Origin: Podarcis filfolensis
Lineage: Eukaryota
Length of the DNA stretch: 64,000 bases
NCBI GenBank assembly: GCA_964270895.1
Contig: OZ185452.1
Strand: one strand, 5' to 3'
The stretch's first letter is position 1, and every line of letters starts with the position of its first letter. Made by a program: the position numbers and the translations under genes. Positions 27,228 through 59,957 of the stretch are shown piece by piece. A model generated the notes under the pieces. The model did no database searches. It was not told the DNA's origin and was given only the letters and a program-made list of their open reading frames with translations.

Positions 27228-29707
27228 TTAATAGCAGCTTCAGGGGCAGCACGGTGGAAAAGGACTAAAAATGTGCTGTCTCTGTATGTACACCAAATAA
27301 GGAGGCAAATGAGGGTGAGTCAGGTCATGATTTTACATTCTCAACATAATTTCATCTACTTATGTGAAAAGGAAAATGTGTTGTAGTTATTTTTAGATTC
27401 TCTATTATAGTCAACAGGGATGAAACAGATTTTCAGATTTAACATCAGACCTGGACCTGAATAATAAATCAAAACAGAATGACACAGAACAGATCCAAAA
27501 GAGACTGGGTTGCTTCTAAATGCTACAAATATAAATACAAATAGAACCTTGTAATTGCTGTGCACCCCTCTTTAATATTTTCCCCGCACCTCTGCTCTGA
27601 TCAAAACCAGAACTTATTGTGAATGCTTTAAGCTTAAAAAAAATGTCAGGAGATCCTGCGGAGTGTTTGGCCTGGCCTCGATATATAGCAAAAGAACTAG
27701 CATTATAACTTAAAAAAATAAGCAACCAAAGTAACAAGCACTAAGCAAAGAAAAGTACCTAGGACAGGTATCTTTTTCTTTAAATGATGATTTGACAACT
27801 GTTTTTGCAAATGTGATTTTCCTGTCAGTGAATCTCCATCTTTAGAGAAAAATTTCATCTGTTCAATATCTGCATATCAAGCAGCACTTTTGGACTGAGA
27901 TATGGTCATCTAATTTTTTTATTATCATAATATATATATTACAAGTCTGGTTCAAACTTACTTATTGAATTACTATCAGGCACAACATGCAGCAGAATAG
28001 TCTGCAAATTGATTTGATTCATGGACATCTCCATATTTACTCCAGTTGCAGACATGGCATAGGCAAACCTTACATCTCTAGAGGAACAGTTTTCTTTGGT
28101 CAAGACAATTCATTCAAGGCAAGAGGTGAAGAGCAGACAATTTTGCAGTGAGGTTCCCCTGCCTTCTGTAACCTTGTGGTGAAATCTCATGATACTTAAA
28201 ACAAGGTTTAATATAAATGAAATCAAAACTTACATAGTTCTTTTCCAGCGCATCAAAGCACCCTTGAATCCTGCTGGAGCAGATATATTAATGAATGAAC
28301 ATTCATCCAAATATATATAGTGATAACATTCTTAGTTGCCAAATGGAGTTTAGAGCTCATAGCAAACAAAATGAAGGAATGCTCTGGAATGTAAAACCTG
28401 TGCCCAGTTAATCAATAGTAAGGATTATATAAATCTCTGGTTTTTGTACCATCCTTGGTTGGGGGTGTATGTAGAGAGTTTGTGCAGAGCCAGGCATCTG
28501 CTACAATCAATATCCACTATGGTATCTTCTTGATCATTTGGGATTTCTGTTTCTTACCACTTGACTATCTGGAGTGAACCCTGGCAGCTTTTATCTTCTC
28601 GAAGAATTTTTAGGCACATGTCTGGAGGAAGAAGAGAAGAAGAAGAGTTTGGATTTGATATCCCGCCTTTCACTCCCCTTCAGGAGTCTCAAAGCGGCTA
28701 ACAATCTCCTTTCCCTTCCTCCCCCACAACAAACACTCTGTGAGGTGAGTGGGGCTGAGAGACTTCAAAGAAGTGTGACTGGCCCAAGGTCACCCAGCAG
28801 CTGCATGTGGAGGAGCGGAGACGCGAACCCGGTTCCCCAGATTATGTGACTACCGCTCTTAACCACTACACCACACTGCAGTTAACAATGCAGTTAACTG
28901 GTGTTTGCCAAGTTGATTTCCAGCTACCAAATATTGGCTGCTTCCGGACAAGTGGCTTCAAGTTCAACCTAACTGCTCTTCCGTTGGAACTCAGAAGTAT
29001 TGTGCTTTTTCTATGTGTACATCTCACTATACTTGCAAACAGAGAGACAGAGACAAAGACAGAGAGAACAGCTTCAAATCCACATTAAGCTTCAATGTAA
29101 GGTAAAGGTAAAGGACCCCTGGACGGTTAAGTCCAGTCGAAGGCAACTGTGGGGTTGTGGCGCTCATCTCGCTTTCAGGCCAAGGGAGCTGGCGTTTGTC
29201 CACAGACAGCTTTCCAGGTCATGTGGCCAGCATGACTAAACTGCTTCTGGCACAACGGGACACCATGATGGAAACCAGAGCACACGGAAACAACGTTTAC
29301 CTTCCCACCACAGGGGTACCTATTTATCTACTTGCACCGGTGTGCTTTCAAACTGCTAGGTTGGCAGGAACTGGGACAGAGCAACAGGAGCTCACCCCAT
29401 CATGCAGATTCCAACTGCCCACCTTCTGATCAGCAAGCCCAAGAGGCTCAGTGGTTTAGACCACAGCGCCACCAGCATCCCTAAACTTCAATGTGGATAA
29501 GCCTGACATGTAATAACTGAAGAGTTCAATGAAACAGAAAAGGCAAAGGCAGCAAACGTTACCATCTAAATAGCAGGTTCCATAAGAGCTTTCTGGGAAG
29601 AGCCCTCGGAGGTAAGTTATGCAGGAGATTGAAACTGCTAGCAGCCTTTTCACCAAAACCATAGACTGCTGCTCAGTGGCAACTCTGTTTGGAAACAGAG
29701 ACGTTTC
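4666..29707 (-). CDS. HORMAD2: HORMA domain-containing protein 2, multi-exon gene span (first coding exon not resolved)
   Basis: Nine exons join in phase to [43 protein letters not shown]...[19 protein letters not shown] (882 nt). Motifs recalled from human HORMAD2 ([54 protein letters not shown]) match HORMAD2 better than HORMAD1. Confidence 0.93.
7611..7760 (+). mobile_element. tRNA-Lys-like SINE with CR1 3' tail
   Basis: gatagctcagtcggaagagcatgagact...gggttcaagcccc joined to gattcctacattg...ctatgattcta. Confidence 0.65.
10823..11426 (-). mobile_element. Sauria SINE interrupted by a nested CORE-type SINE (10925-11177)
   Basis: 15-bp TSD ctcttgagccaagta (10808, 11427); Sauria head/tail; nested element with (TTC)n tail. 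Confidence 0.9.
13994..14235. mobile_element. Tigger/pogo-like MITE
   Basis: TIRs cagtggtacctcggg / cccgaggtaccactg, TA TSD. Confidence 0.88.
14495..14829 (+). mobile_element. Sauria SINE
   Basis: 12-bp TSD taagaccacaca; tRNA head, ctttacc tail. Confidence 0.9.
16186..16439 (-). CDS. HORMAD2: HORMAD2 exon (254 nt) (V)[13 protein letters not shown]...[16 protein letters not shown]
   Basis: Acceptor cctttgcag; donor AAA|gtaaag (an alternative in-phase donor GAG|gttata would end the exon at 16174); TP-x-DYQPPGF safety-belt motif. Confidence 0.92.
16797..18600 (-). mobile_element. CR1 fragments interrupted by an LTR-like insert (17096-17589) and a Sauria SINE (18026-18308, +)
   Basis: CR1 3' motifs in reverse; SINE TSD gtcaagccag; LTR-like part has tgtaggg..., AATAAA near 17477 and ...ttccaaca. 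Confidence 0.7.
18799..18956 (-). CDS. HORMAD2: HORMAD2 exon (158 nt) ...[37 protein letters not shown]
   Basis: Acceptor ttgtttcag, donor gtaggt; HORMA core motif. Confidence 0.95.
21394..21461 (-). CDS. HORMAD2: HORMAD2 exon (68 nt) [22 protein letters not shown](S)
   Basis: Acceptor caatctccag, donor gtaaac; E-x-Y-x-FKFKY motif. Confidence 0.93.
21600..22062. mobile_element. hAT MITE
   Basis: TIRs caggggtc / gacccctg; perfect 8-bp TSD ccttagat. Confidence 0.9.
22404..22647. mobile_element. Tigger/pogo-like MITE
   Basis: TIRs cagtggtacctc / gaggtaacactg, TA TSD. Confidence 0.85.
22705..23053 (-). mobile_element. Sauria SINE
   Basis: 10-bp TSD tactcaaatg. Confidence 0.9.
23309..23490. 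mobile_element. hAT MITE with an internal 22-bp tandem repeat
   Basis: 17-bp TIRs cagtggcgtagcgtggg; 8-bp TSD gctgacag. Confidence 0.88.
23923..23949 (-). CDS. HORMAD2: HORMAD2 micro-exon (27 nt) IYTNPKEPE
   Basis: Acceptor ttcttaaaacag, donor gtaaga; matches the (V/L)YT(N/D)P motif. Confidence 0.88.
25652..25804. mobile_element. Palindromic hAT-type MITE (related copy 54871-55005 with TSD ctgtagat)
   Basis: caggcataggcaaactc / gagtttacctatgcctg; inner gactacaactcccatca palindrome. Confidence 0.8.
26337..26357 (-). CDS. HORMAD2: HORMAD2 micro-exon (21 nt) LHMAVLT
   Basis: Strong acceptor ttttgttttccag, donor gtaagt; matches LRMAVLT of mammalian HORMAD2 as recalled. Confidence 0.9.
28234..28270 (-). 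CDS. HORMAD2: HORMAD2 exon (37 nt) (W)[12 protein letters not shown]
   Basis: Acceptor ctccagcag, donor gtaagt; invariant GCFDALEK motif. Confidence 0.93.
28558..28621 (-). CDS. HORMAD2: HORMAD2 exon (64 nt) (D)[20 protein letters not shown](W)
   Basis: Acceptor ttcctccag, donor gtaaga; phase 1 in, phase 2 out. Confidence 0.93.
28626..28878 (-). mobile_element. tRNA-derived CORE-type SINE (Squam2-like)
   Basis: Minus strand cagtgtggtgtagtggttaagagc...ctgggtgaccttgggccagtcac...(TTC)n tail; same family as 10925-11177. Confidence 0.85.
29097..29480 (-). mobile_element. Sauria SINE (older subfamily)
   Basis: aaggtaaaggacccc...ccacagcgccaccagcatccc. Confidence 0.85.
29563..29707 (-). CDS. HORMAD2: HORMAD2 exon (145 nt) ETSLFPNRV...SYGTCYLD
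   Basis: Acceptor tcattttcag, donor gtaacg; HORMA N-terminal motif [14 protein letters not shown]. Confidence 0.95.
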
Positions 29708-30078
29708 CTGAAAATGATGAAAACATATTTCCTATTTGCTTTAGAAAACAAATAAATAATTGGAGGTCTACATTTTCTTCTTAAAATAATACTACAGGTT
29801 TGCTTTGTACCTTCAAAGTTTTGGGCTTCTGCCCAATATGCAAGAGTTGAGCAGTAGCCATATTCGTTCAGTTAACTGTTTTCCAAGGAGTATTGGACCT
29901 ACAGGAAGACAGATATGCTTGTGATAAGAAAGAGTTACTTCTAGGCAACCAGGGATTTCAGCTGCTCCCTGGCTGCCCCAGTTTTAGACTCCAAATGATT
30001 ACCATAAATATGGCAGGCTAGCAAAAGTTTTTGAAGACCATTAAGCTTTGGAGGCTGATTTTCAAGACTGACCTACGC

Positions 30079-32195
30079 CAAGGGTCAGCAAACTTTTTCA
30101 ACAGGGGGCCGGTCCACAGTCCCTCAGACCTTGTGGGGGGCCGGACTATATTTTTTTGGGGAAAGAAAAGAACAAATTCCTATGCCCCACAAATAACCCA
30201 GAGATGCATTTTAAATAAAAGCACACATTCTACTCATGTAGAAACACGCTGATTCCAGTACTCGTCCATGGGCCAGATTTATAAGGCAATTGGGCCGGAT
30301 CCGGCCCCCGGGCCTTAGTTTGCCTACTTATGCACTATTCAACAGCTATGGCTTACCTGAGTGTGTGTAATAGTTTTAGCTGCCTTTTATTCACATGCCA
30401 TTGATTAGAATAATTGTATTTTAATTTGGTGACAACAGTCACGAAATTAAAAGACACCTGCTCCTTGGGAGAAAGGCGATGACCTAGACCTAGAGAAACC
30501 TAGACAGCATCTTAAAAAGCAGAGACATCACCTTGCCAACAAAGGTCCGTATAGTTAAAGCCATGGTTTTCCCAGTAGTGATGTATGGAAGTGACAGCTG
30601 GACCATAAAGAAGGCTGATCGCCAAAGAATTGATGCTTTTGAATTATGGTGCTGGAGGAAACTCTTGAGAGTCCCATGGAATGCAAGAAGATCAAACGCA
30701 TCCATTCTTAAGGAAATTAGCCCTGAGTGCTCACTGGAAGGACAGATCGTGAAGCTGAGGCTCCAATACTTTGGCCACCTCATGAGAAGAGAAGACTCCC
30801 TGGAAAAGACCCTGATGTTGGGAAAGATGGAGGGCACAAGGAGAAGGGGATGACAGAGGACGAGATGGTTGGACAGTGTTCTCGAAGCTACAAACGTGAG
30901 TCTGACCAAACTGCGGGAGGCAGTGGAAGACAGAAGTGCCTGGCGTGCTCTGGTCCATGGGGTCACGAAGAGTCGGACACGACTAAACGACTAAACAACA
31001 ACATTTATAATTTAGTCGGCACCTTTCATCCATGTTACTCAAGGCAATGAACAATGTTATTTCCCTCTTCTCCTACCTCATTCCCAGTTACAAACATACT
31101 TGAAATAAAAAGCACTCAGATAGCAGGCTAGAAAAAAGCCTTTGCCTTAAACTAGGACAGAGGAAGGGAGACTAATGGTCTATGTGACTCAGTATATGTA
31201 CTGTACAAAGTTAATGAGTGTGACACGCAGGGATAAAGCATAAAGCTTCACTTCTTACTGAGAATCACATTTTCTGAGTATTAGAAATTGGTTCAGTTAC
31301 TGCTTTGAACCATAATAATATTATAAAGAATTGTATAGTCTTCCAGGTTTAAGCCCCAGGTTGAGCAAAAAGATTCCTGCATTGCAGGGGGTTGGACTAG
31401 ATTACCATTGGGATCCCTTCCAACTCTCCAGTTCTCCAGTTCTATGCCTGGGGGACCATACAGCTGTTAGCACCCAGATCATTCAGTTCCTGACAGAAGT
31501 TAGATGAATGCTGTTCTTGAAAGATATTACACAAGCAATTTTTTTATGTTCACAGCAAGAACCTCTGACCACTCGTGATAAAACACTCAGCCATGTCAGA
31601 AGTTCAGGTCTCATATTTTTTGCCCCTTCAACACCATGGCTTAAACATGGGCAGTTGCCCACTTAGCCGTGAACTATGACAGGGTCTTCTTGGTGGTGGC
31701 TCCCCATTGATGGAATGCCCTCCATGGGTGTAGCCAGGATTGTTTTTGAGGAGCAGGCTTTTGTTAGGGGAGGCAAATTTTTTTAGCGGGGGATAGAACC
31801 TCATATTTGTATTGATTTGTAGTGATTTTTTTGAGGGGGAAACAGCTGCCCCCCTGGCTATGCCCATGATGCCCTCCCTAGTGAGGTGCGTTTGTCTGCA
31901 ACCTTTAGGAGTAATTCAAAACTTTCCTGTTTATCCAGTGCATGGGTAGGCAAACTAAGGCCCCGGGCCGGATCGGGAGCCGGCCCAATCACCTTCTAAA
32001 TCCGGCCTGCGGACGGTCTAGGAATCAGCATGTTTTTATATGAATAGAATGTGTGCTTTTATTTAAAATGCATCTGCGGGTTATTTGTGGGGCATAGGAA
32101 CTCGTTCATTTCCCCCCCAAAATGTAGTCCGGCCCCCCACAAGGCCTGAGGGACAGTGGACTGGCCCCCTGCTGAAAAAGTTTGCTGACCCCTGA
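30079..32195. mobile_element. Three hAT-type MITEs: 30079-30330, 31723-31868 (TSD atgccctc), 31940-32195; all repeated in duplication unit 2
   Basis: cagcaaactttt...tttgccta termini in both orientations; TIR catgggtgtagcc / ggctatgcccatg. Confidence 0.75.
30436..31005 (+). mobile_element. BovB (RTE) LINE 3' fragment (duplicate at about 34448-35010)
   Basis: RT C-terminus KAMVFPVVMYGSDSWTIKKADRQRIDAFELWCWR...SLEK; tail gtcggacacgactaaac(aac)n. Confidence 0.93.
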
Positions 32196-32639
32196 TCCAG
32201 TGCATTTGAAGGCCGACAGATACTGTCCCTGGCAATTTTGGGTTGCACCAATGCTAGTCCTACTCAGAGCAGACCCACAGAGGGTAATTTATTTTTAATA
32301 AATGTGTATATACTTATAACAATATCCAAGTGGTTTCCAACAATTATACATACACTGTATGTACCATACAATAAGTTAGTGGGTGTGACTCATTTAAATC
32401 AATTAAGTTCCACAGGTTTACCCTGAGCAGGACTTAAGTTGGACACAATCCCTGAAATGTTTAGCTGTGAGGTGAATTTCTCCCCAGAGGTTTTTTAACT
32501 GCTCTTTTTTTGTTTGTTTAGTCGTTAATTGTATTGTTTTATTACAGAAGTGTTTGCCTCCCTGGGCTCATTTGCAATGAAGGGCGAAATTATAAATTTA
32601 AGAAATGAATACTAAGCGACCCCTGGAACGCGTGAAGGG

Positions 32640-33370
32640 CAGCTGAAGTGTCCCTGAGGAAGTGCAGAGCGCGTTTCCCTTGAGGATCAGATCAAAGGAG
32701 GGCTATTTTCAAACTGAGAAGAAACTGAGCCTCTCCAGACCTCTAATTAGGCTGTGGGCTATCTCGAAGTTGGGGCAAGCACTGGGGACGTTTGTTTCCT
32801 TCTTTCCCTATATATTTGGGGGGTTTTGCAACGGCGGGAGGGAAAGCCGCAATTTCCCTCAGACGGAGCTTCCCTTCAGGTCGAATAGAATCCTGCCCGC
32901 TTCCCGCCTAAATTCAACGGTCGACTCTGACGCTCCCTCAGGCGGGCGCTGAATTTAGGCGGGAAACGGGCAGGATTCTGTTCGACCCGAGGGGAAAAAA
33001 ACCTGAGGGAAAACCTCTGGTCTCGATGGACCAAGGGGCAGCTTCCTATTGTCTTGCAAATAAAGTTGGCTCGGGTGGAGGGAGGGAATCTGCTTCGCCA
33101 GCTCCGCTGCTTCCTCCTCCTCCTCCTCCAGTCTCTCCCCGAAACCATCAAAGAGATGCCAGCCCCTTCCAAGGTCCCGTTCAGGCTCGTCCTGCCGGCT
33201 ACTTGCGCAAGGGAAAGGGCGTCCTTTGTTTTGTTACAAGCCCCAGTTCCCGCCTGTTGGAAGGGGGAGGTGGCTCAAGGCGAAACAAACGCGCCCGCTA
33301 GGTTCTTTCTTCGGCCGCTATTGGTTTGCTTTTTGGCTTTTGGTTTGTTCCTTTATTTTGGCAAGTTGGC
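32640..33370. promoter_or_regulatory. CpG-rich bidirectional promoter candidate for HORMAD2 (-) and the AidB-like ACAD (+), copy 1 (copy 2 at about 36640-37490)
   Basis: Local CpG enrichment between two divergently oriented genes; GGCGGGA/TTCCCGCC (E2F-type) and CAACGG (MYB-type) motifs. TSS not determinable. Confidence 0.65.
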
Positions 33371-33503
33371 CATGTGAACGCCTTGCAAGCCGAAGCTGTC
33401 AAACTGCGAAGTTTGGTTGCAAAACTTAGGGCAAGCAGGGAATCAAAAGTGCAAAGCTTGGGGCAAGAGGCGAATCGCGTTTCCCAAAGGCTGGAATCAG
33501 CAA

Positions 33504-33662
33504 ATGGAGGCCATGGATCAAAAATGCTCCTCACAACACCCAAGAGAGCTTTTTGCCAGGAAAGAAATTGGGGTCTTTTGTCAAGAACAGCCTAGGATTG
33601 GAAATCCATATCTGGAAGATGCTTTTCTTCAGGATTACTTGAAATCACAGCTACCAGCTGAG
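33504..33662 (+). CDS. Duplicated AidB-like ACAD exon 1 (copy 1), intact, potential alternative first exon
   Basis: Same peptide as 37620-37778, intact donor gtctgt; followed by the duplication junction at 33892. Confidence 0.7.
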
Positions 33663-36600
33663 GTCTGTATTTTATATATGTCATATTATATACATAGACA
33701 CACAGATATATATTTAATGCGCGCGCACACACACACACACAAAAAGGTTCTGTTCTCTCACCTGTTTTATTTGACCTTAAATAGGAAGGTACCTTCCACT
33801 GAATCAAACCAATTGGCCTATCTAGCTCAGTATATTTGACTGGCAACAGCTCTCCAGGGGTTTGGACAGGGAACCTTTCCCAGCCCTACCTAGCCCTGTA
33901 GGTATTGGACCTACAGGAAGACAGATATGCCTGTGATAAGAAAGAGTTACTTCTAGGCAACCAGGGATTTCAGCTGCTCCCTGGCTGCCCCAGTTTTAGA
34001 CTCCAAATGATTACCATAAATATGGCAGGCTAGCAAAAGTTTTTGAAGACCATTAAGCTTTGGAGGCTGATTTTCAAGACTGACCTACGCCAAGGGTCAG
34101 CAAACTTTTTCAACAGGGGGCCAGTCCACAGTCCCTCAGACCTTGTGGGGGGCCGGACTATTTTTGGGGGGGGAAAGAAAAGAACAAATTCCTATGCCCC
34201 ACAAATAACCCAGAGATGCATTTTAAATAAAAGCACACATTCTACTCATGTAGAAACACGCTGATTCCAGTACTCGTCCATGGGCCAGAATTATAAGGCA
34301 ATTGGGTCGGATCCGGCCCCCGGGCCTTAGTTTGCCTACTTATGCACTATTCAACAGCTATTGCTTACCTGAGTGTGTGTAATAGTTTTAGCTGCCTTTT
34401 ATTCACATGCCATTGATTAGAATAATTGTATTTTAATTTGGTGACAACAGTCACGAAATTAAAAGACACCTGCTCCTTGGGAGAAAGGCGATGACCTAGA
34501 CCTAGAGAAACCTAGACAGCATCTTAAAAAGCAGAGACATCACCTTGCCAACAAAGGTCTGTATAGTTAAAGCCATGGTTTTCCCAGTAGTGATGTATGG
34601 AAGTGACAGCTGGACCATAAAGAAGGCTGATCGCCAAAGAATTGATGCTTTTGAATTATGGTGCTGGAGGAAACTCTTGAGAGTCCCATGGAATGCAAGA
34701 AGATCAAACGCATCCATTTTTAAGGAAATTAGCCCTGAGTGCTCACTGGAAGGACAGATCGTGAAGCTGAGGCTCCAATACTTTGGCCACCTCATGAGAA
34801 GAGAAGACTCCCTGGAAAAGACCCTGATGTTGGGAAAGATTGAGGGCACAAGGAGAAGGGGACGACAGAGGACGAGATGGTTGGACAGTGTTCTTGAAGC
34901 TACAAACGTGAGTCTGACCAAACTGCGGGAGGCAGTGGAAGACAGAAGTGCCTGGCGTGCTCTGGTCCATGGGGTCACGAAGAGTGGGACACGACTAAAC
35001 AACAACATTTATAAGTTAGTCGGCACCTTTCATCCATGTTACTCAAGGCAATGAACAATGTTATTTCCCTCTTCTCCTACCTCATTCCCAGTTACAAACA
35101 TACTTGAAATAAAAAGCACTCAGATAGCAGGCTAGAAAAAAGCCTTTGCCTTAAACTAGGACAGAGGAAGGGAGACTAATGGTCTATGTGACTCAGTATA
35201 TGTACTGTACAAAGTTAATGAGTGTGACACGCAGGGATAAAGCATAAAGCTTCACTTCTTACTGAGAATCACATTTTCTGAGTATTAGAAATTGGTTCAG
35301 TTACTGCTTTGAACCATAATAATATTATAAAGAATTGTATAGTCTTCCAGGTTTGAGCCCCAGGTTGAGCAAAAAGATTCCTGCATTGCAGGGGGTTGGA
35401 CTAGATTACCATTGGGATCCCTTCCAACTCTCCAGTTCTCCAGTTCTATGCCTGGGGGACCATACAGCTATTAGCACCCAGATCATTCAGTTCCTGACAG
35501 AAGTTAGATGAATGCTGTTCTTGAAAGATATTACACAAGCAATTTTTTTATGTTCACAGCAAGAACCTCTGACCACTCGTGATAAAACACTCAGCCATGT
35601 CAGAAGTTCAGGTCTCATATTTTTTGCCCCTTCAACACCATGGCTTAAACATGGGCAGTTGCCCACTTAGCCGTGAACTATGACAGGGTCTTCTTGGTGG
35701 TGGCTCCCCATTGATGGAATGCCCTCCATGGGTGTAGCCAGGATTGTTTTTGAGGAGCAGGCTTTTGTTAGGGGAGGCAAATTTTTGTTAGTGGGGGATA
35801 GAACCTCATATTTGTATTGATTTGTACTGATTTTTTTGAGGGGGAAACAGCTGCCCCGCTGGCTATGCCCATGATGCCCTCCCTAGTGAGGTGCGTTTGT
35901 CTGCAACCTTTAGGAGTAATTCAAAACTTTCCTGTTTATCCAGTGCATGGGTAGGCAAACTAAGGCCCCGGGCCGGATCGGGAGCCGGCCCAATCGCCTT
36001 CTAAATCCGGCCTGCGGACGGTCTGGGAATCAGCATGTTTTTATATGAATAGAATGTGTGCTTTTATTTAAAATGCATCTGTGGGTTATTTGTGGGGCAT
36101 AGGAACTCGTTCATTTCCCCCCCCAAAATGTAGTCCGGCCCCCCACAAGGCCTGAGGGACAGTGGACTGGCCCCCTGCTGAAAAAGTTTGCTGACCCCTG
36201 ATCCAGTGCATTTGAAGGCCGACATACTGTCCCTGGCAATTTTGGGTTGCACCAATGCTAGTCCTACTCAGAGCAGACCCACAGAGGGTTATTTATTTTT
36301 AATAAATGTGTATATACTTATAACAATATCCAAGTGGTTTCCAACAATTATACATACACTGTATGTACCATACAATAAGTTAGTGGGTGTGACTCATTTA
36401 AATCAATTAAGTTCCACAGGTTTACCCTGAGCAGGACTTAAGTTGGACACAATCCCTGAAATGTGAGGTGAATTTCTCCCCAGAGGTTTTTTAACTGCTC
36501 TTTTTTTGTTTGTTTAGTCGTTAATTGTATTGTTTTATTACAGAAGTGTTTGCCTCCCTGGGCTCATTTGCAATGAAGGGCGAAATTATAAATTTAAGAA

Positions 36601-37619
36601 ATGAATACTAAGCGACCCCTGGAACGCGTGAAGGGCAGCTGAAGTGTCCCTGAGCAAGTGCAGAGTGCGTTTCCCTTGAGGATCAGATCAAAGGAGGGCT
36701 ATTTTCAAACTGAGAAGAAACTGAGCCTCTCCAGACCTCTAATTAGGCTGTGGGCTATCTCGAAGTTGGGGCAAGCACTGGGGACGTTTGTTTCCTTCTT
36801 TCCCTATATATTTGGGGGGTTTTGCAACGGCGGGAGGGAAAGCCGCAATTTCCCTCAGACGGAGCTTCCCTTCAGGTCGAATAGAATCCTGCCCGCTTCC
36901 CGCCTAAATTCAACGGTCGACTCTGACGCTCTCCTCAGGTGGGCGCTGAATTTAGGCGGGAAACGGGCAGGATTCTGTTCGACCCGAGGGGGGAAATCTC
37001 TGGCCGTTTATTTTTTTATTAAATCATTAATCCGGGTTCAGTGCCTCAAAGCATCTATCTCCAAAAGCTGGGCTGGGAGAAACTCGCTGCCTGAAAACCT
37101 GGAGAGCGATTGCTGCCAGGGTTTGTGGACAATACTGAGCTCGATGGACCAAGGGGCAGCTTCCTATTTTCTTGCAAGTAAAGTTGGCTCGGGTGGAGGG
37201 AGGGAATCTGCTTCGCCAGCTCCGCTGCTTCCTCCTCCTCCTCCTCCAGTCTCCCCGAAACCATCAAAGAGATGCCAGCCCCTTCCAAGGTCCCGTTCAG
37301 GCTCGTCCTGCCGGCTACTTGCGCAAGGGAAAGGGCGTCCTTTGTTTTGTTACAAGCCCCAGTACCCGCCTGTTGGAAGGGAGAGGTGGCTCAAGGCGAA
37401 ACAAACGCGCCCGCTAGGTTCTTTCTTCGGCCGCTATTGGTTTGCTTTTTGGCTTTTGATTTGTTCATTTATTTTGGCAAGTTGGCCATGTGAACGCCTT
37501 GCAAGCCGAAGCTGTCAAACTGCGAAGTTTGGTTGCAAAGCTTAGGGCAAGCAGGGAATCAAAAGTGCAAAGCTTGGGGCAAGAGGCGAATCGCGTTTTC
37601 CAAAGGCTGGAATCAGCAA

Positions 37620-37778
37620 ATGGAGGCCATGGATCAAAAATGCTCCTCACAACACCCAAGGGAGCTTTTTGCCAGGAAAGAAATTGGGGTCTTTTGTCAA
37701 GAGCAGCCTAGGATTGGAAATCCATACCTGGAAGATGCTTTTCTTCAGGATTACTTGAAATCACAGCTACCCGCTGAG
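37620..37778 (+). CDS. AidB-like ACAD exon 1 (copy 2, contiguous with the rest of the gene) MEAMDQK...YLKSQLPAE
   Basis: [15 protein letters not shown] motif; donor gtctgt; start codon uncertain (37620 or 37629). Confidence 0.85.
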
Positions 37779-40700
37779 GTCTGTATTTTATATATCATCA
37801 TATATACATAGACACACAGATATATATTTAATGCATGCACACACACACACAAAATGTTCTGTGACATCTAGAGACTCCTAGAATTGTAGAATTAGAAGGG
37901 ACTCCAAGGGTAATCTCATCCAACCCCCTACAATGCAAGAATCTCAGCTCGTTTGCACAGACAATTTACATGGATTTGACTACTTCCTCTGATTTTTAAA
38001 AAAGCAAGACTGAGACTCTTAGGACAGCACCCCATGCATCCAAATGTAGCAGCCTACACTGAATTCCAAAGTTGTCCTTGAGTACCATCCAATATTTCAC
38101 AAATGGAAATAGAGACAGGTTAGTAAAATTCCTATTCCTATACCAAGGACCGCTGCACAAGCCACCACTATCTTTTGCACATTGCTAAAGGTTCTGTTCT
38201 CTCACCTGTGTTAATTGACCCTACATAGGAAGGTACCTTCCACTGAATCAAACCAATTGGCCTATCTAGCTCAGTATATTTGACTGGCAACAGCTCTCCA
38301 GGGGTTTGGACAGGGAACCTTTCCCAGCCCTACCTGGAGCCACCATTGGGGACTGAACTAGGGACCTTTTGTCTGCAAAGCCGATGCTCTTCCCCTGTGT
38401 TACAGCAAAGTATTTTGCCCTCCACTGATTTAAAAGTCAAATGGGTGTTTGCTCTTTGCTTAAAAGTTATGCAAAAAGCCAGCAGTTTGCGCTGTTCCCA
38501 AGCTGCTGTCCACAGTTAAAAACAAACCTCACTAGTTGAAGCAGGTGAAAAGTGAACTATGTATGGGTCATTATGTATGTGCAGTTATTAAGTAGTAACT
38601 TTTATAAGTGCAAGACAGTCTCCCAAGCCATGTTTTGGAGGAAAGTCCAAAAGTTCAGGCAGCGGGGTTGATTCTTTATAACATAAGCGCATTTCAAATA
38701 GCAGCAGTACATAATACTCAGTTTAAAAGGATCAGTATAGGAGACAGGTGAGGTCAAACAGGGAGCCCAATACTTTGTTTTATGTTCTGCTTGCTGTGAT
38801 GTTTTTATTTTATTTTATTATTTTATTTTACTTTTTATTTATACATAGATACATACATACCGGTATGTACTTGTCCATCCGCCCACATTCTTTTACTTTG
38901 CAGGTGTTTGCTGACGTAAGTTTGGACCTTGAACAGTTTGGGGCTCGAGTGAAGGATGAAATTGATCTCCTGGGACGCAAGTGTGAGTTAAACCCTCCAC
39001 AACTTAAGCAGTTCGATGCCTGGGGGCGGCGTGTGGATGAAATTATCACCTGCCCAGCCTGGAAGAGGATGAAGGAGATCTCGGCTGAGGAGGGGCTGAT
39101 TGCTGAGGCTTATGAGAGGAGATACTCTAACTGGAGGTACAAATTTAGTTGACACTTTCAGACTCAGTTGGCCACACTTCAGGGCAGCGAACATGTCCAT
39201 ATACCTCCAGTGCCATTCAAAATGAAATGTCCCTACAGTGGGGATAGTGACACTTTCCTAGACGAAAGCACTCCCACGGTAGAACTCCCACAGCAATAAT
39301 GATTGGCCACCGATTTGGATGGCTTTACAAGACAGCAAGGTCAATGCATGTAAGGCTACTATCAATGGCTAGTAGCTATGATGGCTATGTTCTGCCTCCA
39401 CTGTTGAAGGCAGTATGCCTCTGAACTCCATTTGCTGGGAATTGGAAGTGGGAAGACTGTTGTTGTACTCATGTCCTGCTTGTGAGCTTCTCATTGAGGC
39501 ATCTGGTTGGCCACTGTGAGAACAGAGTGCTGAGCCTGATAGGCCTTTAGCCAAGCTCTTCTTGTGTTCTTGTGTAGCTATAATCCAGCTGAGATCTCCC
39601 TATAGCAAATATATTTTTCCCTTGGCATTTCTAAATTCAGCAAGGCTTTGTTTCTCCTTCACAGCCGCGTTCATCAGATTGCAAAACTGTACCTTTTCGC
39701 ACTTTCTTCTGGTGCTTTTTCAGCTCCTCTGGGCATGACTGATGGAGCAGCAAAAGTAATAGAGGTGAGATCACAAGTCAGTGCTCAGCAGGTAGATCAC
39801 TATATTGCATTACTCTGAATTAGACTAAGTTGGAGGTTCATTTCTGGAATGCTGCTACCAAAGTAAAACACCCTCCCCATAAGTTCCCCTTACCAAAAAA
39901 CAAAACCTCTATCCACAACACTATTATTTAGAAACTTTAGAGAGCTGCTAGACTAATACTGAGGTAGGCTAATGGTCTGACTCTATATAAGACATATTCC
40001 TCAGTTCCCCAAGGCCTTCCCTAATAAGGCCAGATTGGGAGTTAGCAAAACTGGTGCATACGTGGCATCCTGGCTCTGCTTAGATCCAAAGTGAAGCATA
40101 TCAGCCAGCTGTGCTGAAAAACCTTTTGGCCATTATCTCAGAGGCAGATCTTTGGCAGCACAACTGGTTCTACCACACTGGGCTCTGAGCCTACAGGGCA
40201 CCATAGTGAGTTGTTGTGTAAGACCTCTGTGGGAAAGCTCCCTTGTCTGACTTTGCAGCTCACCCAGCCCTAGCCAGACTGTCATGGACTGGTTGGATGC
40301 AGAGGAGTGGTGGGAGGCACCAGCAAGGGAACCACCAGGCAAAGAAGGCTCAGAACCAGGGCATTTGTGGTAGGACAATGATGCAGGATCAGAGGAAAGT
40401 GTTGAAAGCTGAATAAGCAACAGGGTTTAGTGAGCAGGAAGAGGCTGTGGTGGAGGGCAGCCGAGCCTCAGAGGTGTCAGAGGAATGGGGCCAGGAGACA
40501 GAAATGAGGGAGGCTGCTGAAGAATTCAGGGAGTCTCCCCCTCCTGCTGGGACCAGCTCTCCTCCCACCTGGTCTCCCAAAGCATGCAGTGGAATAAAGA
40601 GGGAGGAGCAACAAATGACAGGACAAAGGAGCTTTGGGCTGCTGTGGAAGGAACCAGGAGAGGAAATCCTGTTTGTTTTTTTTCTCCCGTCTGTTTCCTG

Positions 40701-43700: not shown

Positions 43701-46700
43701 GGAAAACAAGAAAAAAAATATTCTAAACGAAATAGTGATATATGATTTTTGTGGTTCATGCTGTGGCCGCAGACATGTGATCTGACAGTGAGTTTGGAGT
43801 AGCCCAATGCAAAAATCCTGAGGATCCATGTGGATCCATGCTTTGTAACCACAGAGGAGGCAAGGAAGGGGAACCATGGATCCTCTGCTCACGACTGCAG
43901 CAGATCCCCTCCGCCACCCGCAGGCATTCGCTCCATAACACGCACAGACATTTCCCCTTACTTTCTAGGAGGAAAAAAGTGAGTGTTATGGTGCAAAAAA
44001 TACGGTAATTCATGTCCTCTTCCCTAAGACCTACTGGGTCCCTGGGCTTAATTATGGCTCTTTGAATCATGCTGCTGTCTGAATAAGCATTAAAGTAAGA
44101 TGAGGTTGGCTGTGAAAATGCTGTTAAGAAACTCCTGGTTTCCAAATTGTGGTAGTAAACTACAGTTCCCAGGATTTCTTTGGGAGAAACATGTACTTGC
44201 AGTGTATGGTCAGATGGTAACTTCCATGTTACTGTCTCTCAAATAAAACCACTGCTTGTGAGCTACAATTAGCTACCTCAATCAGAAATCTACACAGAGG
44301 AAGAATGAGGAACCTGAGACACTCCAGATGTTGTTAGACTACAGCTCCCATCATTTCTGACTATTGGCCATGCTGGCTGAGGCTGGTGCAAGTTGTAATC
44401 CAGCAACACCTGGAAGGCCACAGGTTAGTCACTCCCCTCAACAGCTGTGGCCTTTGTGACCTTGGGGCATGTCTTCTCACATGTGACCTTTTTGGGGCAC
44501 TAAGGTCATCAGTAGAGGCCTTGCTCCAAATCCTGCCCCTTTCTGGAGCCAGACTGAGTGATTTCCCAATTGGCTTGCCAGCTAACAAGAATCCTCCCTG
44601 ACTTTGTGTTGTGAATAAGAGCTATCAAGCAGGTAGGTTGTTTGTAGTATGTGAGCAACAAAGTGATGCATCTAAAGCATAATTACAGCATGATATGAGA
44701 GCAAGAGTAGGAAAAATAGCCAAGTGCATTTAATTAGCTAAAAATTGCCTTCCATCTCCAGAGTGATCACCCTGGCAAGGGATTATGCCACCAAGAGGGA
44801 AGCCTTTGGGAAACCCCTGAAGGCTCACCCTTTGCACATGCAGACTTTGGCTCGAATGGAGGTGAGCATTCGGAGGTGCTGGTTTTGTTTGACCTTGACC
44901 CTTGAGGTCTTCCCCTGCCACCTATGAAGCACATGAGACTCCCCTCCACATTCACGTTCCTCTTGGTTGTGAGGTGAAGGTGATTTCTTCTTTCTCCCTT
45001 GAAAAGCCCATAGAGCCGAAGGAGGAAGTTGGAAGAGTGAGGTTCTTTCTCACAACCTCTTTCAGCTCCATGTGCTTTTCAGACCTCAGATAAATTCCGT
45101 TGGATCCAGCAGCTCCCTAAGAAAAGCAAAATGCCTGTAGTTTTTCTCTGTCTCAAGGTGGGGTGGGAGCTTACCAGTGGGAGTGCAAAAAGAAGTGACC
45201 AGAGGTGGTGGCAGTGGCTCTCCAGGATTTCAGGCAGGGAACCTGGATATATCAGGCACTGAACCAGGATTTCAAGCAGCCCTACCTGGATATGTCTGGC
45301 ATCAAACTTGAGACCTCATGCATGTTAGGCAAATGCTCTACCACTAAGCTAAAATCCTTAAGACATAGGAAGCTGCCTTAAACTGAGTAAGACATCATTT
45401 TCCATCTAGTTCATTACTGTCTACATTAACTGGCTCTGGCTTTCCAGTGTTTCAGGCAAGGAACACTTCCAGCCCTACCTGTCTATTCCAGGGATTGATC
45501 TTGGGACTTTCTGTATGCGAAGCAGGTGTCCTGCCACTCAGCTACCGCCCTTGCCCAATATGAAATCCTTGTTTCTGCTTGTTTCTGATACTTGTTGAAA
45601 GAACTTTGTGTGCTCCTCCAACCTGCCCCAATGATCCCATGCTGTCTTGCTCCTGCAGGTGCAAGCTCGAGGAGCATTCCTGCTGATGATGGAGATAGGG
45701 AAATTGCTTGGACTGGAAGAAACCAAGAAGGACACTGAACAAGACCAGCACATGCTTAGGCTGCTGACACCTGTTGCCAAACTTTACACTGGGAAACAAG
45801 TAGTGTTTCAAGGCCTAGAATTTGGTTTCATGGTTTAGTTACCGTATTTTTCGCACCATAGGACGCACTTTTTCCCCTCCAAAAATGAAGGGGAAATGTG
45901 TGTGCGTCCTATGGTGCGAATGCAGGCTTTCGCTGAAGCCTGGAGAGTGAGAGGGGTCGGTGCGCACAGACCCCCCACGCTCTCCAGGCTTCGCACACCT
46001 CTCTGCAAGCAGCGGGAGCCCAGCGCTGGGCTCCCGCTGCTTGCGGAGAGTTGCCTGCATGCGGAAGCCTGCGCGCGCTGAGATCAGCGCGCCCAGGCTT
46101 CGCGGACCTCTCCGCAAACAGCGGGAGCGGTCCCGCTGCTTGTGGAGACTTGCCTGCATGCCGAAGCCTGCGCGCGCTGAGCTCAGCGCGCCCAGGCTTC
46201 GCGGATCTCTCCGCAAGCAGCGGGAGCGGTCCCGCTGCTTGCGGAGAGTTGCCAGCATGCGGAAGCCTGCGCGCGCTGAGCTCAGCGCGCCCAGGCTTCG
46301 CGGATCTCTCCGCAAGCAGCGGGAGCGGTCCCGCTGCTTGCGGAGACTTGCCTGCATGCCGAAGCCTGCGCGCGCTGAGCTCAGCGCGCCCAGGCTTCGC
46401 GGACCTCTCCGCAAACAGCGGGAGCGGTCCCGCTGGTTGCGGAGAGTTGCCAGCATGCGGAAGCCTGCGCGCGCTGAGCTCAGCGCGCCCAGGCTTCGCG
46501 GATCTCTCCGCAAGCAGCGGGAGCGGTCCCGCTGCTTGCGGAGACTTGCCTGCATGCCGAAGCCTGCGCGCGCTGAGCTCAGCGCGCCCAGGCTTCGCGG
46601 ATCTCTCCGCAAGCAGCGGGAGCGGTCCCGCTGCTTGCGGAGAGTTGCCTGCATGCCGAAGCCTGCGCGCGCTGAGCTCAGCGCGCCCAGGCTTCGCGGA

Positions 46701-49700
46701 TCTCTCCGCAAGCAGCGGGAGCGGTCCCGCTGCTTGCGGAGACTTGCCTGCATGCCGAAGCCTGCGCGCGCTGAGCTCAGCGCGCCCAGGCTTCGCGGAC
46801 CTCTCCGCAAACAGCGGGAGCGGTCCCGCTGGTTGCGGAGAGTTGCCAGCATGCGGAAGCCTGCGCGCGCTGAGCTCAGCGCGCCCAGGCTTCGCGGATC
46901 TCTCCGCAAGCAGCGGGAGCGGTCCCGCTGCTTGCGGAGAGTTGCCTGCATGCCGAAGCCTGCGCGCGCTGAGCTCAGCGCGCCCAGGCTTCGCGGATCT
47001 CTCCGCAAGCAGCGGGAGCGGTCCCGCTGCTTGCGGAGAGTTGCCTGCATGCCGAAGCCTGCGCGCGCTGAGCTCAGCGCGCCCAGGCTTCGCGGACCTC
47101 TCCGCAAGCAGTGGGAGCGCTCCCACTGCTTGCAGAGAGCTGCCTGTTTGGGGGCTGGGGTCGGGGGAAGCTTCCCCCGCCCCAGCCCCGCGCCTGGGGG
47201 GGAAATAATTTTTCCCCTTTATTTCCCCCCCAAAAAACTGGGTGCGCCCTATGGTCCGGTGCGCCCTATGGTGCGAAAAATACGGTACATATTGGGCTCT
47301 GAAGTAAAAAGGGAGGATTCACAGAGCAGCCAGGTTCTATTTGTGGGGGAGAAAAGGAAAGGAAAGGAAGAACAAAACTTGGTAATTGTTTAATGGCCAA
47401 GTGGTTGTGAAATAGTAACACCCTGCCAGGGTAAGTGTATTCAAGAAATTGAACTATTATAAACATATTGGAATGATAGCTACTCCGATGTTTTCCTGGA
47501 TGGGCTCCTGCCCTAGGGTGGTCCCTTAGCCTTGATCCTCTTTTCAACAAGCCTTTCCCATCCTCAGATTCTAGACAGTGCAAACTGGGATAGTGCAAAT
47601 GTGCCGCATTTCACCTCCCCACATCCCAGTCTGCTGACAGGACTGTAATGCGCTTTAGGTGTATATAAAGTTGTCAGAGATGGGTGGAGACCAGGGGCAG
47701 ATCTCTGGGTGTTCAAGGTTAATGGGAATGTGCACATACCACATGTCTTTGTTGCAGGCTGTTGCGGTTACCTCAGAAGGGCTGGAGTGTTTTGGAGGGC
47801 AGGGCTACATGGAAGATACAGGCCTGGCAGGAATTTTACGGGATGTCCAGGTATTAAGCCACACCCCCACACCCTGCAATAAATGCATTTTTCTTAGCTT
47901 CTCCTTCTTTCAGCAGCCTATATCCTATAGCAATGCTGTTGAGGTAGAGCAGGGGACAAAAACTGGCTTCAGAATCTTGGTGGTGGCTCCATTATTTGGA
48001 GTCTCCAGGAGCTTAGACATTGCTTGTCACAGTGGTCTAAGCTCACACTACAATTAGTTATTTTCACTCTTCTTTCAGGTAAAAGTTCTGCAGTTCAAAA
48101 ATGTACTCTCTGCATCTGTTTCTCCAGGATTAAGAATGCACCAGCTGTTGATAGAGAGTGTCTTAGAAAGAGCAGCTTCAAACTGTGTCCCTACAGCTTG
48201 TAACTGGATTTACGCACCAAATACCAGGGGCTTCAATTTAACGGCAGGTGTTAATCATGAGTTAGATACAATCCCTTAGTGCCAATGTTATTTCTTCAAA
48301 GATGAATATTTATAGTAAGCCGATAGAAGTCTCCTGAGATGCCCCAACCCTCTGTCTGCTGTAAGAAATGAATACAGCTGGCAGATTGTGAAGGATGGAC
48401 CAGTTCTCAGCTACAAAGAGCACTATCAAGGAATAGTTATGCAAACACAAACAGGCTATATTTGGGAGGGGCATTCAAAAATATTAGTTGGAGGGCAGTG
48501 CCCACCCTGCCCTAGATCAAGCAACACCCCCAAAATGTTTGTTTACAAATTAGATATAGGCCAGGTTAAGATCAGACCACACAATACACTGCAGGCACAT
48601 GAAATGAAGTCCTGACAATCCCTTCTCTATTGCAAAGCACATCCGGGAGACTGCATTTCATCAGAGAAGAGCTGGGGGCACGTGTCACCATTCCACTCTC
48701 ACTTGTTAACAGCGGTCTTCTGTTCTTTTTTGGTGGCCGGGGGTGAGTGTGCACTGGGCGGGGGCTGGACATGCAGGGCCCAGAGAACCCACCATGCCAG
48801 GTTTCCCTCACCGCCAACACTGTTAAGTGTACATACATGGGGCATGGAGTGTTCACGGAGCCTGTGTGCTAATTCATCCCTGGCCACCAGAATCAAGCGG
48901 GGCTATGCTCCTGCCCACCCATGCAGGGAGAAGCCTGGCTGACCGACATGGTCCTTGGCTGGCAAATCCCCATCCCACCCTGACGCTGGCCAGGCAGACA
49001 TTCGGCAAGGGGGCTGGGGACACAGCGGTCAAGCCAGGCCAGGCTCCAGGGCTGAGAAACCCCAGCAGCAGGCAGGTGGGACAGGACTCCCTGTGTGGTT
49101 CACACCCCCTAAAAATCATGCACCTGCTGCTCCCCCCCCCCCATGCTATTCCCCTGCTTGTTAATATAGTTTGGATGGGAACATCACAGATGGTAGAAAG
49201 CAGCTGTCGGGAAAGAGCTCAGCATCCTCTGCTACCCATTTTCCAACTCAAAACCGTGCTGACCAGTGTATTTTGTGACCAGAAAGGGCAATTTGTTTTT
49301 CAGCTTTCTACGTTTATTTTCTTCAGGCTTTGCCAACTTGGTGCCCTGCAGTTGTTCTGGACTACAATTCTTAGCAGTCCCAGCCAGCACAGCCATAGAA
49401 TGCTGGAGCTGGTGGGAGTTGTAGTCCAAAACATTTGGCAGAGATTGAGATATTGCAGAGATTTCAGGAGCGATATTTCATCTGGAGTGACATGCAGTTC
49501 TTACTCTTCTATCCATTACTAGTCTAACATCTCAACTTTCCCTCAACGTCTTAGATTTCGGCTTCCTTCCCTTGTCATTTTGTTTGCTGTCCCACTTTTC
49601 TCTGACTCCCTGACAGGTGCTAACTATCTGGGAAGGAACAACCAATATCCTCTCTCTGGATGTTCTGCGCTCCCTAGTCAAGAGCCAAGGAAAAGTGCTG

Positions 49701-59455: not shown

Positions 59456-59493
<38 letters not shown>

Positions 59494-59957
59494 ATTAAAT
59501 ATATATCTGTGTGTCTATGTATATAATATGATATATATAAAATACAGACCTCAGCTGGTAGCTGTGATTTCAAGTAATCCTGAAGAAAAGCATCTTCCAG
59601 ATATGGATTTCCAATCCTAGGCTGTTCTTGACAAAAGACCCCAATTTCTTTCCTGGCAAAAAGCTCTCTTGGGTGTTGTGAGGAGCATTTTTGATCCATG
59701 GCCTCCATTTGCTGATTCCAGCCTTTGGGAAACGTGATTGGCCTTTTGCCCCAAGCTTTGCACTTTTGATTCCCTGCTTGCCCTAAGCTTTGCAACCAAA
59801 CTTCGCAGTTTGACAGCTTCGGCTTGCAAGGCGTTCACATGGCCAACTTGCCAAAATAAATGAACAAATCAAAAGCCAAAAAGCAAACCAATAGCGGCCG
59901 AAGAAAGAACCTAGCGGGCGCGTTTGTTTCACCTTGAGCCACCTCCCCCTTCCAACA
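57707..59957 (-). pseudogene. Inverted AidB-like ACAD fragment: exon 1 (59708-59550), exon 2 deleted, exon 3 (58251-58152)
   Basis: Reverse complement matches 33255-33740, 38191-38902 and 39174-40209; exon 1 (phase 0) to exon 3 (phase 2) is out of frame. Confidence 0.9.

Follow-up and report, generated by a model that had tools for sequence, protein, structure and literature searches.

Structure of the duplicated HORMAD2-ACAD interval

The stretch of DNA analysed here (the window; 64 kb from Podarcis filfolensis) contains a gene assigned to HORMAD2, an ACAD gene and, in the interval between them, a ~4 kb unit that is present twice as a head-to-tail direct repeat with a defined junction (Table 1). 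Repeat search, BLAST and MAFFT alignment all agreed on this arrangement, and the resulting boundaries matched exactly the tandem unit at 29890-38335 that had been proposed in an initial annotation of this DNA. That annotation had also placed ACAD exon 1, with an intact donor, within the unit and the downstream coding exons of both genes outside it, and both statements were borne out: exon 1 and its donor are present in both copies, and ACAD exon 2 and the HORMA-domain exon are external. Neither gene has lost its native arrangement: HORMAD2 adjoins copy 1, and ACAD exon 2 adjoins copy 2.

Table 1. Coordinates of features in and around the tandem unit (positions are those of the window)
Feature	Position	Strand	Remarks
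HORMAD2, next coding exon	29564-29704	-	Start of HORMA domain (Pfam HORMA, E=2e-10); outside unit
HORMAD2 start-codon exon, coding part	29811-29861	-	MATAQLLHIGQKPKTLK then GT donor; outside unit, 29 bp from left edge
Copy 1	29890-33891		4002 bp; left-hand unit, adjoining HORMAD coding exons
Putative acceptor of HORMAD ATG exon	29899-29912	-	Conserved polypyrimidine tract and AG; inside copy 1
LINE tail fragment	30533..31050 (copy 1), 34545-35054 (copy 2)	+	Inside unit; dispersed copies in Zootoca (L005)
CpG-rich region, copy 1	32600-33450	.	Putative promoter (moderate); without 121 bp kept in copy 2 and all relatives
Deletion specific to copy 1	33006/33007		121 bp
ACAD exon 1, coding part, copy 1	33504-33662	+	53 codons; ATG, donor GAG/GTCTGT; ACAD#1-type
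Junction filler	33892-33901	.	AGCCCTGTAG; 10 bp, templated insertion between copy 1 and copy 2
Copy 2	33902-38335		4434 bp; right-hand unit, adjoining ACAD exon 2
Duplicate acceptor	33911-33924		Inside copy 2
CpG-rich region, copy 2	36600-37550	.	Putative promoter (moderate)
121-bp segment	37004-37124		Kept in copy 2
ACAD exon 1, coding part, copy 2	37620-37778	+	ATG, identical donor; four sites in ACAD#2/3 state
Minimal non-allelic gene-conversion tract	37599-38224	.	In copy 2; ACAD#2/3-type; includes 330-bp segment
330-bp segment	37857-38186		Kept in copy 2; TSD-like ends
ACAD exon 2	38904-39137	+	AidB_N (Pfam E=3.5e-8); single copy; outside unit; putative common splice target for both exon 1 copies
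Third, partial copy of ACAD 5' end	57707-60398	-	Inverted

A HORMA domain was identified in the HORMAD2-assigned gene. Its naming as HORMAD2 and not HORMAD1 is tentative and is based on the presence of an MTMR-like neighbour, as at the human locus. The ends of the HORMA gene CDS in P. muralis (L001) and P. raffonei (L003) map to the ATG of the start-codon exon. The left breakpoint of the unit is positioned 9 nt downstream of the AG of the putative acceptor; the tract and AG are conserved from Zootoca to Podarcis, consistent with use as an acceptor. In copy 2, the duplicate acceptor leads into the junction filler and then into ACAD intron 1 in antisense orientation, and not to the ATG exon. Of the HORMAD2 5' region previously assigned to the unit, non-coding 5' sequence and the conserved acceptor were indeed located there, while the start codon was found to be external. 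The idea of a second usable HORMAD2 first exon is not supported, as the copy-2 acceptor has no ATG exon behind it and transcripts from copy 2 would meet this orphan acceptor first.

The ACAD gene is the first of several AidB/ACAD11-like genes. The near-identical P. raffonei protein P0271 carries PF18158, PF02770, PF00441 and PF22217 and, together with the AidB_N match of exon 2, places the gene among the AidB/ACDH-11-type acyl-CoA dehydrogenases (AidB_N, ACAD middle, C-terminal and ACDH-11_C domains). The 53 residues encoded by exon 1 are identical in the two copies, and the copy-1 sequence is the same as that of P. raffonei ACAD#1 and of the third copy in the window. Four copy-specific differences reported earlier for exon 1 (33545, 33587, 33611 and 33656) are real and all synonymous. 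Consequently, the proposal that each gene possesses two possible first exons holds for ACAD, with the same protein from either, and is not supported for HORMAD2.

With exon 1 intact in duplicate, an identical donor on each copy and a single exon 2 downstream, the gene has an arrangement of multiple variable first exons, comparable to the UGT1, PCDH and GCNT2 clusters, whose tandem first exons each possess an upstream region and a donor of their own and share a common second exon (PMC1885805). In contrast to those clusters, there are just two copies here, their identical peptides provide no protein diversity by encoding different protein parts, and the use of both is putative.

Pfam searches were performed with exons queried one at a time. 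No Pfam match was obtained for the LINE tail fragment, which, judging from its peptide, is presumably Bov-B/RTE-like, and ten ORFs of the window around the unit that were looked up have no exact match on record in the protein collection.

Putative promoter region

Both copies contain a region that is only moderately CpG-rich (GC 0.5-0.6, CpG o/e 0.5-1.0 over about 0.8 kb; window background 0.31). A bidirectional promoter usually consists of divergent TSSs <1 kb apart, mostly within one CpG island. HORMAD2 and ACAD are arranged head-to-head with their start codons 3.6 kb apart, and the label 'bidirectional promoter' is therefore unproven. The gene ranges retrieved from the relatives comprised CDS only, the transcript-derived Logan proteins P0173, P0202 and P0210 are not lacertid, and a search of the literature for HORMAD2 together with 'bidirectional promoter' yielded no relevant paper.

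Anatomy of the junction

All ten bases of the filler between the copies are templated from the flanks, an outcome with a probability of about 0.005 in a simulation using random 10-mers. The AGCCCT of the filler repeats 33882-33887, corresponding to direct copying of the flank, and CCTGTAGGT (33895-33903) is the reverse complement of ACCTACAGG (33909-17), corresponding to inverted copying. The copies meet at a sharp junction, and the two breakpoints share no sequence homology from which a false overlap could arise. No ORF of at least 30 aa spans it, and a word search of the protein collection using the ORF that ends 55 bp before it returned no match.

Templated insertions are described as characteristic of polymerase theta, and insertions at the junctions of tandem duplications have been reported (PMC7368036); the present filler, being identical to nearby flank, has the features of such an end-joining scar. 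As it is fully templated, true end joining is a likelier source of it than an assembly artefact. The duplication resembles polymerase-theta tandem duplications (PMC7368036, PMC8654963) in its head-to-tail, kb-scale unit, the lack of long breakpoint homology and the direct plus inverted templated insertion. It differs from them in representing a natural germline variant in a lizard, with the enzyme deduced from the scar alone and with copies that are 1.1% diverged rather than identical.

Divergence of the copies and comparison with relatives

Each of the four related assemblies (P. raffonei L003, P. muralis L001, P. lilfordi L004 and Zootoca L005) has only one copy of the unit, and outside the unit the window aligns collinearly with P. 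raffonei at about 99%. The duplication would be best explained as private to this Podarcis lineage or individual. Substitution divergence between copy 1 and copy 2 was 1.14% (3320 clean columns of the alignment), compared with 1.05% between copy 1 and P. raffonei and 1.23% between copy 2 and P. raffonei. Informative (shared-derived) sites were split 6:6:5, or 4:4:3 when two outgroups were used, and indels conflicted in the same manner. Both the divergence between the copies and the site patterns are allele-like. Since the copies are as far apart from each other as from P. raffonei, and given the 6:6:5 split, we infer that they trace back to separate allelic lineages or to a duplication that is old and polymorphic.

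The two copies also differ in length. The 121-bp segment deleted from copy 1 is present in copy 2 and in all relatives compared, and the deletion of the 330-bp segment is common to copy 1, P. raffonei ACAD#1 and the third copy. Insertion of these segments into copy 2 was ruled out, as both were found in outgroups; the greater length of copy 2 is attributed, on alignment, to ancestral segments lost from copy 1.

A third copy and gene conversion

The third copy, a partial and inverted one of the ACAD 5' end that the initial annotation had missed, contains an intact exon 1 with donor (59550-59708) and a copy of exon 3 (58152-58253), exon 2 being deleted. It continues unbroken across the right breakpoint of the tandem unit and retains part of a ~650-bp promoter segment that both tandem copies have lost. 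Segmental duplications and paralogous copies abound at this locus.

Across the minimal conversion tract, copy 2 is the same as P. raffonei ACAD#2/3, with which it shares the 330-bp segment and three states derived in ACAD#2/3, and on either side it is the same as ACAD#1. The limits of the tract fall within 37499-37599 and 38224-38348, giving a length of 0.65-0.85 kb. Non-allelic (interlocus) gene conversion occurs between tandem paralogues, and the sharply bounded tract, with its derived states and ACAD#1-type flanks, resembles such events. The conversion donor was deduced from ACAD#2/3 of P. raffonei, as the donor gene of the present species lies beyond the window. The four exon-1 differences of copy 2 and its 330-bp segment are ascribed, from these sequence matches, to the ACAD#2/3 conversion tract. 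With all four differences synonymous, selection acting on each copy of exon 1 was considered, but it was dropped because the differences represent ACAD#2/3 states; the synonymous-only pattern is explained by gene conversion from a functional paralogue.

Origin of the duplication

We favour, with a probability of roughly 0.6, a genuine ~4 kb end-joining tandem duplication that originated from allelic lineages or was long polymorphic, that was later altered by ACAD#2/3 conversion and that likely has no consequence. The HORMAD2-ACAD interval would have been duplicated head-to-tail, with 29 bp separating the end of the duplicated segment from the HORMAD2 start codon, and the break would have been sealed by alternative (polymerase-theta-type) end joining, a mechanism suggested by the scar, to leave the 10-nt templated insertion. 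The copies would not derive from one sequence after the P. raffonei split. Instead, two old allelic lineages may have been brought together by exchange between homologues, or the duplication may have been polymorphic for a long time and have recombined with single-copy haplotypes. Copy 2 would afterwards have received the 0.65-0.85 kb tract from an ACAD#2/3 paralogue. As the protein is unchanged and both genes keep their native upstream regions, the duplication would most likely have no effect, or would add no more than a redundant alternative first exon to ACAD. It appears to be a genuine structural variant that is presumably neutral.

An assembly artefact, in which two haplotypes (~1% divergent, with three indels and the conversion tract) were laid end to end as a false heterotype duplication of a truly single-copy locus, appears unlikely, albeit with appreciable weight. 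Such duplications share with the present case an allele-like divergence, absence from related assemblies and a variable, repeat-rich region, and they cluster where heterozygosity is raised, some being joined by wrongly filled, unsupported sequence rather than by a gap (Ko et al., PMC9516828). The single-copy state in all four related assemblies would be expected of an artefact; the divergence between the copies, equal to that from P. raffonei, and the 6:6:5 split would suit two alleles with deep coalescence (an ILS-like pattern), and the region is full of paralogous copies and hence hard to assemble. However, there is no N anywhere in the window, and hence none between the copies, and no gap separates them. 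The junction is biologically structured and lacks breakpoint homology, and its direct-plus-inverted templated filler is not expected from an overlap or consensus step. Furthermore, the gap-free 64-kb context and the chromosome-scale assembly (18 pieces) suggest modern long reads, and in modern long-read assemblies haplotypes stitched in tandem within one contig are not known to be common.

The age of the copies, which matches that of the species split, together with the 330-bp deletion and exon-1 states shared by copy 1 and P. raffonei ACAD#1, would also accommodate an old duplication that predated the P. raffonei split and has since disappeared from that species, either by true loss or through collapse in its assembly. 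This history is nevertheless improbable: had one copy been lost through unequal crossing-over, the remaining unit would end as copy 2 does on the right, whereas P. raffonei has a copy-1-type right end that would require a crossover within the last 150 bp. The unit occurs just once in P. lilfordi, P. muralis and Zootoca as well, and the peculiarities of copy 2, with three shared paralogue-derived states, fit ACAD#2/3 conversion better. Very improbable is a fixed or common duplication, likewise involving two allelic lineages and conversion, in which both promoter copies fire, such that ACAD#1 gains a first exon and promoter and the HORMAD2-side promoter runs antisense through it. In the model derived from the initial annotation, both copies of a truly bidirectional promoter would be active, and transcription of ACAD from copy 1 and of HORMAD2 from copy 2 would converge over ~4 kb and be mutually repressive, giving a germline/soma switch. 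The geometry permits this, provided that the CpG-rich region fires both ways; ATG and donor are intact in both ACAD exon 1 copies, and promoter switching is described for 5'-overlapping gene pairs (PMC8076222). Such an interference switch is nonetheless speculation and the least probable reading of all, given the wide spacing of the start codons, the unduplicated HORMAD2 ATG exon with its orphaned copy-2 acceptor, the absence of 121 bp of conserved upstream region from copy 1, the sufficiency of one copy in four of four relatives and an exon 1 pattern accounted for by conversion rather than selection.

Implications

The duplication opens no long-standing question. The Podarcis ACAD11-like locus represents a multi-copy array, so that neither the number of genes nor their models can be taken as robust there. 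Apparent 'purifying selection' in the duplicated exon is a gene-conversion artefact, and the exon-1 markers suggested in the initial annotation cannot distinguish copy 2 from ACAD#2/3 transcripts; sites that would separate these two are 37620 (A vs G) and 37688 (G vs T). If the duplication is real and both promoters fire, the locus would provide a natural pair of convergent promoters linking a meiotic gene with a metabolic one. If real, the duplication would represent a clean natural example of a small end-joining duplication that creates a spare promoter and first exon, the copies of which then exchange with paralogues, and P. raffonei, at a distance of ~1%, would supply the 'before' state for direct comparison.

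Structure of the tandem unit and its flanking genes

The tandem repeat placed between HORMAD2 and the AidB-like ACAD gene by the initial annotation was recovered with identical boundaries by repeat finding, BLAST and alignment. Within a window that contains no N, copy 1 and copy 2 differ at 1.14% of sites (3320 cleanly aligned columns) and are also separated by several indels, the largest of which (121 bp and 330 bp) represent sequence found in copy 2 only. Comparison of the breakpoint sequences revealed no homology between the left and right duplication breakpoints. The junction filler is wholly accounted for by copied nearby bases, AGCCCT being a direct copy and CCTGTAGGT an inverted copy (reverse complement) of ACCTACAGG, which lies five bases downstream; just 0.5% of random 10-mers reached such complete templating in a simulation. 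The right breakpoint (38335) falls within a tRNA-like SINE, and each unit holds an inverted pair of SINE-like repeats (~260 bp, 84% identical) at 30079-30336/31937-32194 and 34091-34348/35942-36200.

Features of the HORMAD2-ACAD locus in the window
Feature	Position	Strand	Remarks
HORMAD HORMA-domain exon	29564-29704	minus	
HORMAD start-codon exon	29811-29861	minus	MATAQLLHIGQKPKTLK then GT
Copy 1	29890-33891		tandem unit
CpG-rich region, copy 1	roughly 32600-33450		moderately CpG-rich
ACAD exon 1, copy 1	33504-33662	plus	159-nt coding
Junction filler	33892-33901		10 bp, between copies 1 and 2
Copy 2	33902-38335		tandem unit
CpG-rich region, copy 2	roughly 36600-37550		moderately CpG-rich
ACAD exon 1, copy 2	37620-37778	plus	159-nt coding
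ACAD exon 2, common	38904-39137	plus	acceptor ...CTTTGCAG; Pfam AidB_N match
Copy 3, inverted partial ACAD 5' end	57707-60398	minus	tblastn and self-BLAST
Copy 3, exon 3 copy	58152-58253	minus	exon 2 deleted
Copy 3, exon 1	59550-59708	minus	intact, with donor
Direct copy of ACAD exons 5-6	62990-64000		tblastn and self-BLAST

The ACAD gene encodes an AidB/ACDH-11-type dehydrogenase (NCBI name 'acyl-CoA dehydrogenase family member 11-like'), and the P. raffonei protein XP_053225329.1 perfectly matches exons 1-3 of the window, exon-edge overhangs aside. The downstream coding exons of both genes were confirmed to lie outside the unit (the HORMA-domain exon and ACAD exon 2, the latter 570 bp to its right). 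ACAD exon 1 has, as initially described, an intact donor in both copies, with ATG context, donor (GAG|GTCTGT) and 53-residue peptide all alike, and a copy-1 transcript could splice from 33663 to 38903 to encode the same protein. From its MTMR-like neighbour, as at the human HORMAD2 locus, we infer that the HORMAD gene is HORMAD2 and not HORMAD1. Its supposedly duplicated 5' region comprises upstream sequence inside the unit, but not the start-codon exon, which lies 29 bp off the left edge. A polypyrimidine-AG motif within the unit (29899-29912), a putative acceptor conserved from Zootoca to Podarcis, has the left breakpoint 9 nt beyond its AG. The copy-2 version runs into the filler and then into antisense ACAD intron 1 and is therefore an orphan acceptor, which a HORMAD2-direction transcript starting in copy 2 would meet first. 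The claim of two possible first exons per gene thus holds for ACAD, both exon 1 copies being intact, but is not supported for HORMAD2, given this orphaned acceptor.

Comparison with related lizards

The window, which comes from a Podarcis genome distinct from the P. raffonei reference assembly, is collinear with that reference (~99% identical; substitution divergence of 0.66-1.7% per segment), the duplication being the sole large structural difference in the HORMAD2-ACAD 5' region. Each of the four relatives, P. raffonei (L003), P. muralis (L001), P. lilfordi (L004) and Zootoca vivipara (L005), has only one copy of the 4-kb unit; in P. raffonei, L003 5260-12549 aligns collinearly with both flanks and a single unit between them. 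Judged by the outgroups, both the 121-bp and the 330-bp segments are ancestral, the former having been lost in copy 1 only, and the latter in copy 1, copy 3 and the first raffonei paralogue (ACAD#1). Neither tandem copy nor raffonei ACAD#1 has an ancestral ACAD upstream segment of ~650 bp (L001 9484-10135; window position 33255/37371), which is retained in the further raffonei paralogues (ACAD#2/3), the outgroups and, in part, copy 3. Because this deletion covers the start of the long P. muralis X1 CDS, which lies within the segment, ACAD#1 may have lost its ancestral TSS in the window's lineage.

Inside the unit, a 0.6-kb segment (31003-31624) is inverted in P. muralis (L001 7713-7087). Further downstream, 45843-47285 (1.44 kb, holding a 99-bp minisatellite/MITE) has no counterpart in muralis, in raffonei or in any of the raffonei paralogues, and is therefore an insertion private to the lineage of the window genome, while 5.8 kb of raffonei (L003 25556-31389) is missing at window ~54870, probably reflecting a transposon insertion or deletion.

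Three ACAD11-like genes plus fragments occur between HORMAD2 and the MTMR-like gene of P. raffonei (L003, L002 and L006; CM049765.1, 22.95-23.07 Mb); the fetched P. muralis and P. lilfordi loci hold one such gene each. Copy 3 and the array are common to the window and P. raffonei, with both ends matching and an intervening distance of ~4.3-4.4 kb in each. Being oriented toward the ACAD#1 3' end, copy 3 is a candidate that could serve as an antisense promoter toward this gene. The 5' regions of raffonei ACAD#2 and ACAD#3 gave identical BLAST statistics, so that the two either arose by very recent duplication or were duplicated in the assembly.

Gene conversion in ACAD exon 1

Across 37599-38224, copy 2 carries raffonei ACAD#2/3 states (seven of seven sites in the exon-1 tract), three of which (37772, 37799 and 37800) are derived in ACAD#2/3. 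The 330-bp segment within this tract is 98.5% identical to ACAD#2/3, and copy 2 is ACAD#1-type on both flanks (37397-37498 and from 38348 on). As read from these site states, the tract is a non-allelic gene conversion of about 0.65-0.85 kb. Because the donor was a functional exon, the four exon-1 differences are all synonymous; selection on both copies was therefore rejected as an explanation, the pattern being no evidence for it. For the same reason that copy-2 exon 1 carries ACAD#2/3 states, the copy-specific exon-1 SNPs proposed initially are unable to separate copy-2 from ACAD#2/3 transcripts.

Origin of the duplication

The divergence between the copies is close to that of either from raffonei (1.05% for copy 1 and 1.23% for copy 2). 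With P. lilfordi as outgroup, shared-derived sites united copy 1 with copy 2 (6), copy 1 with raffonei (6) and copy 2 with raffonei (5); two agreeing outgroups gave the same split as 4:4:3, mostly at non-CpG sites, and small indels showed the same conflict. Simple homoplasy was ruled out as the source of the site splits, as it cannot yield such numbers. Near-equidistance and these conflicts imply that the copies did not diverge from one sequence since the raffonei-lineage split. A true duplication between two divergent homologues fits this pattern, as do a duplication that has long been polymorphic and recombining with single-copy haplotypes, and an assembler that stitched two haplotypes together.

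We consider the duplication real with a probability of about 0.75-0.8, summed over the real scenarios. That it is a false product of assembly is unlikely, albeit in keeping with the absence of the tandem unit from all four relatives, the allele-like divergence of its copies and a neighbourhood rich in duplications. False duplications usually have gaps between their copies, although some are bridged by wrongly filled sequence (Ko et al., PMC9516828); here, no gap is present, the breakpoints share no homology and the filler is templated to an extent rarely matched by chance. Polymerase-theta end joining, of which templated insertions are a recognized hallmark, also yields tandem duplications (PMC7368036).

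Functional implications

The 'bidirectional promoter' of the initial annotation is hypothetical, because the fetched gene ranges of relatives begin at start codons (L003 6238 and 10001, corresponding to window 29862 and 33504) and so give no TSS position, and the two start codons are 3.6 kb apart. Its CpG component was found in each copy, albeit with only moderate richness. Convergent transcription would require this region to initiate in both directions in each copy. Both genes retain their native arrangement, which pairs HORMAD2 with copy 1 and copy-2 exon 1 with ACAD exon 2; copy 1 lacks 121 bp of conserved upstream sequence. A HORMAD2/ACAD 'interference switch' is very improbable.

A literature search found no paper on this duplication locus. 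The locus exemplifies known phenomena: a young segmental duplication in tandem whose junction bears an end-joining scar (PMC7368036), a duplicated alternative first exon resembling UGT1/PCDH-type clusters (PMC1885805), from which it differs in that the ACAD exon 1 copies give no protein diversity, and, in the copy-2 tract, interlocus gene conversion. As a structural variant, the duplication is most likely neutral or nearly so.
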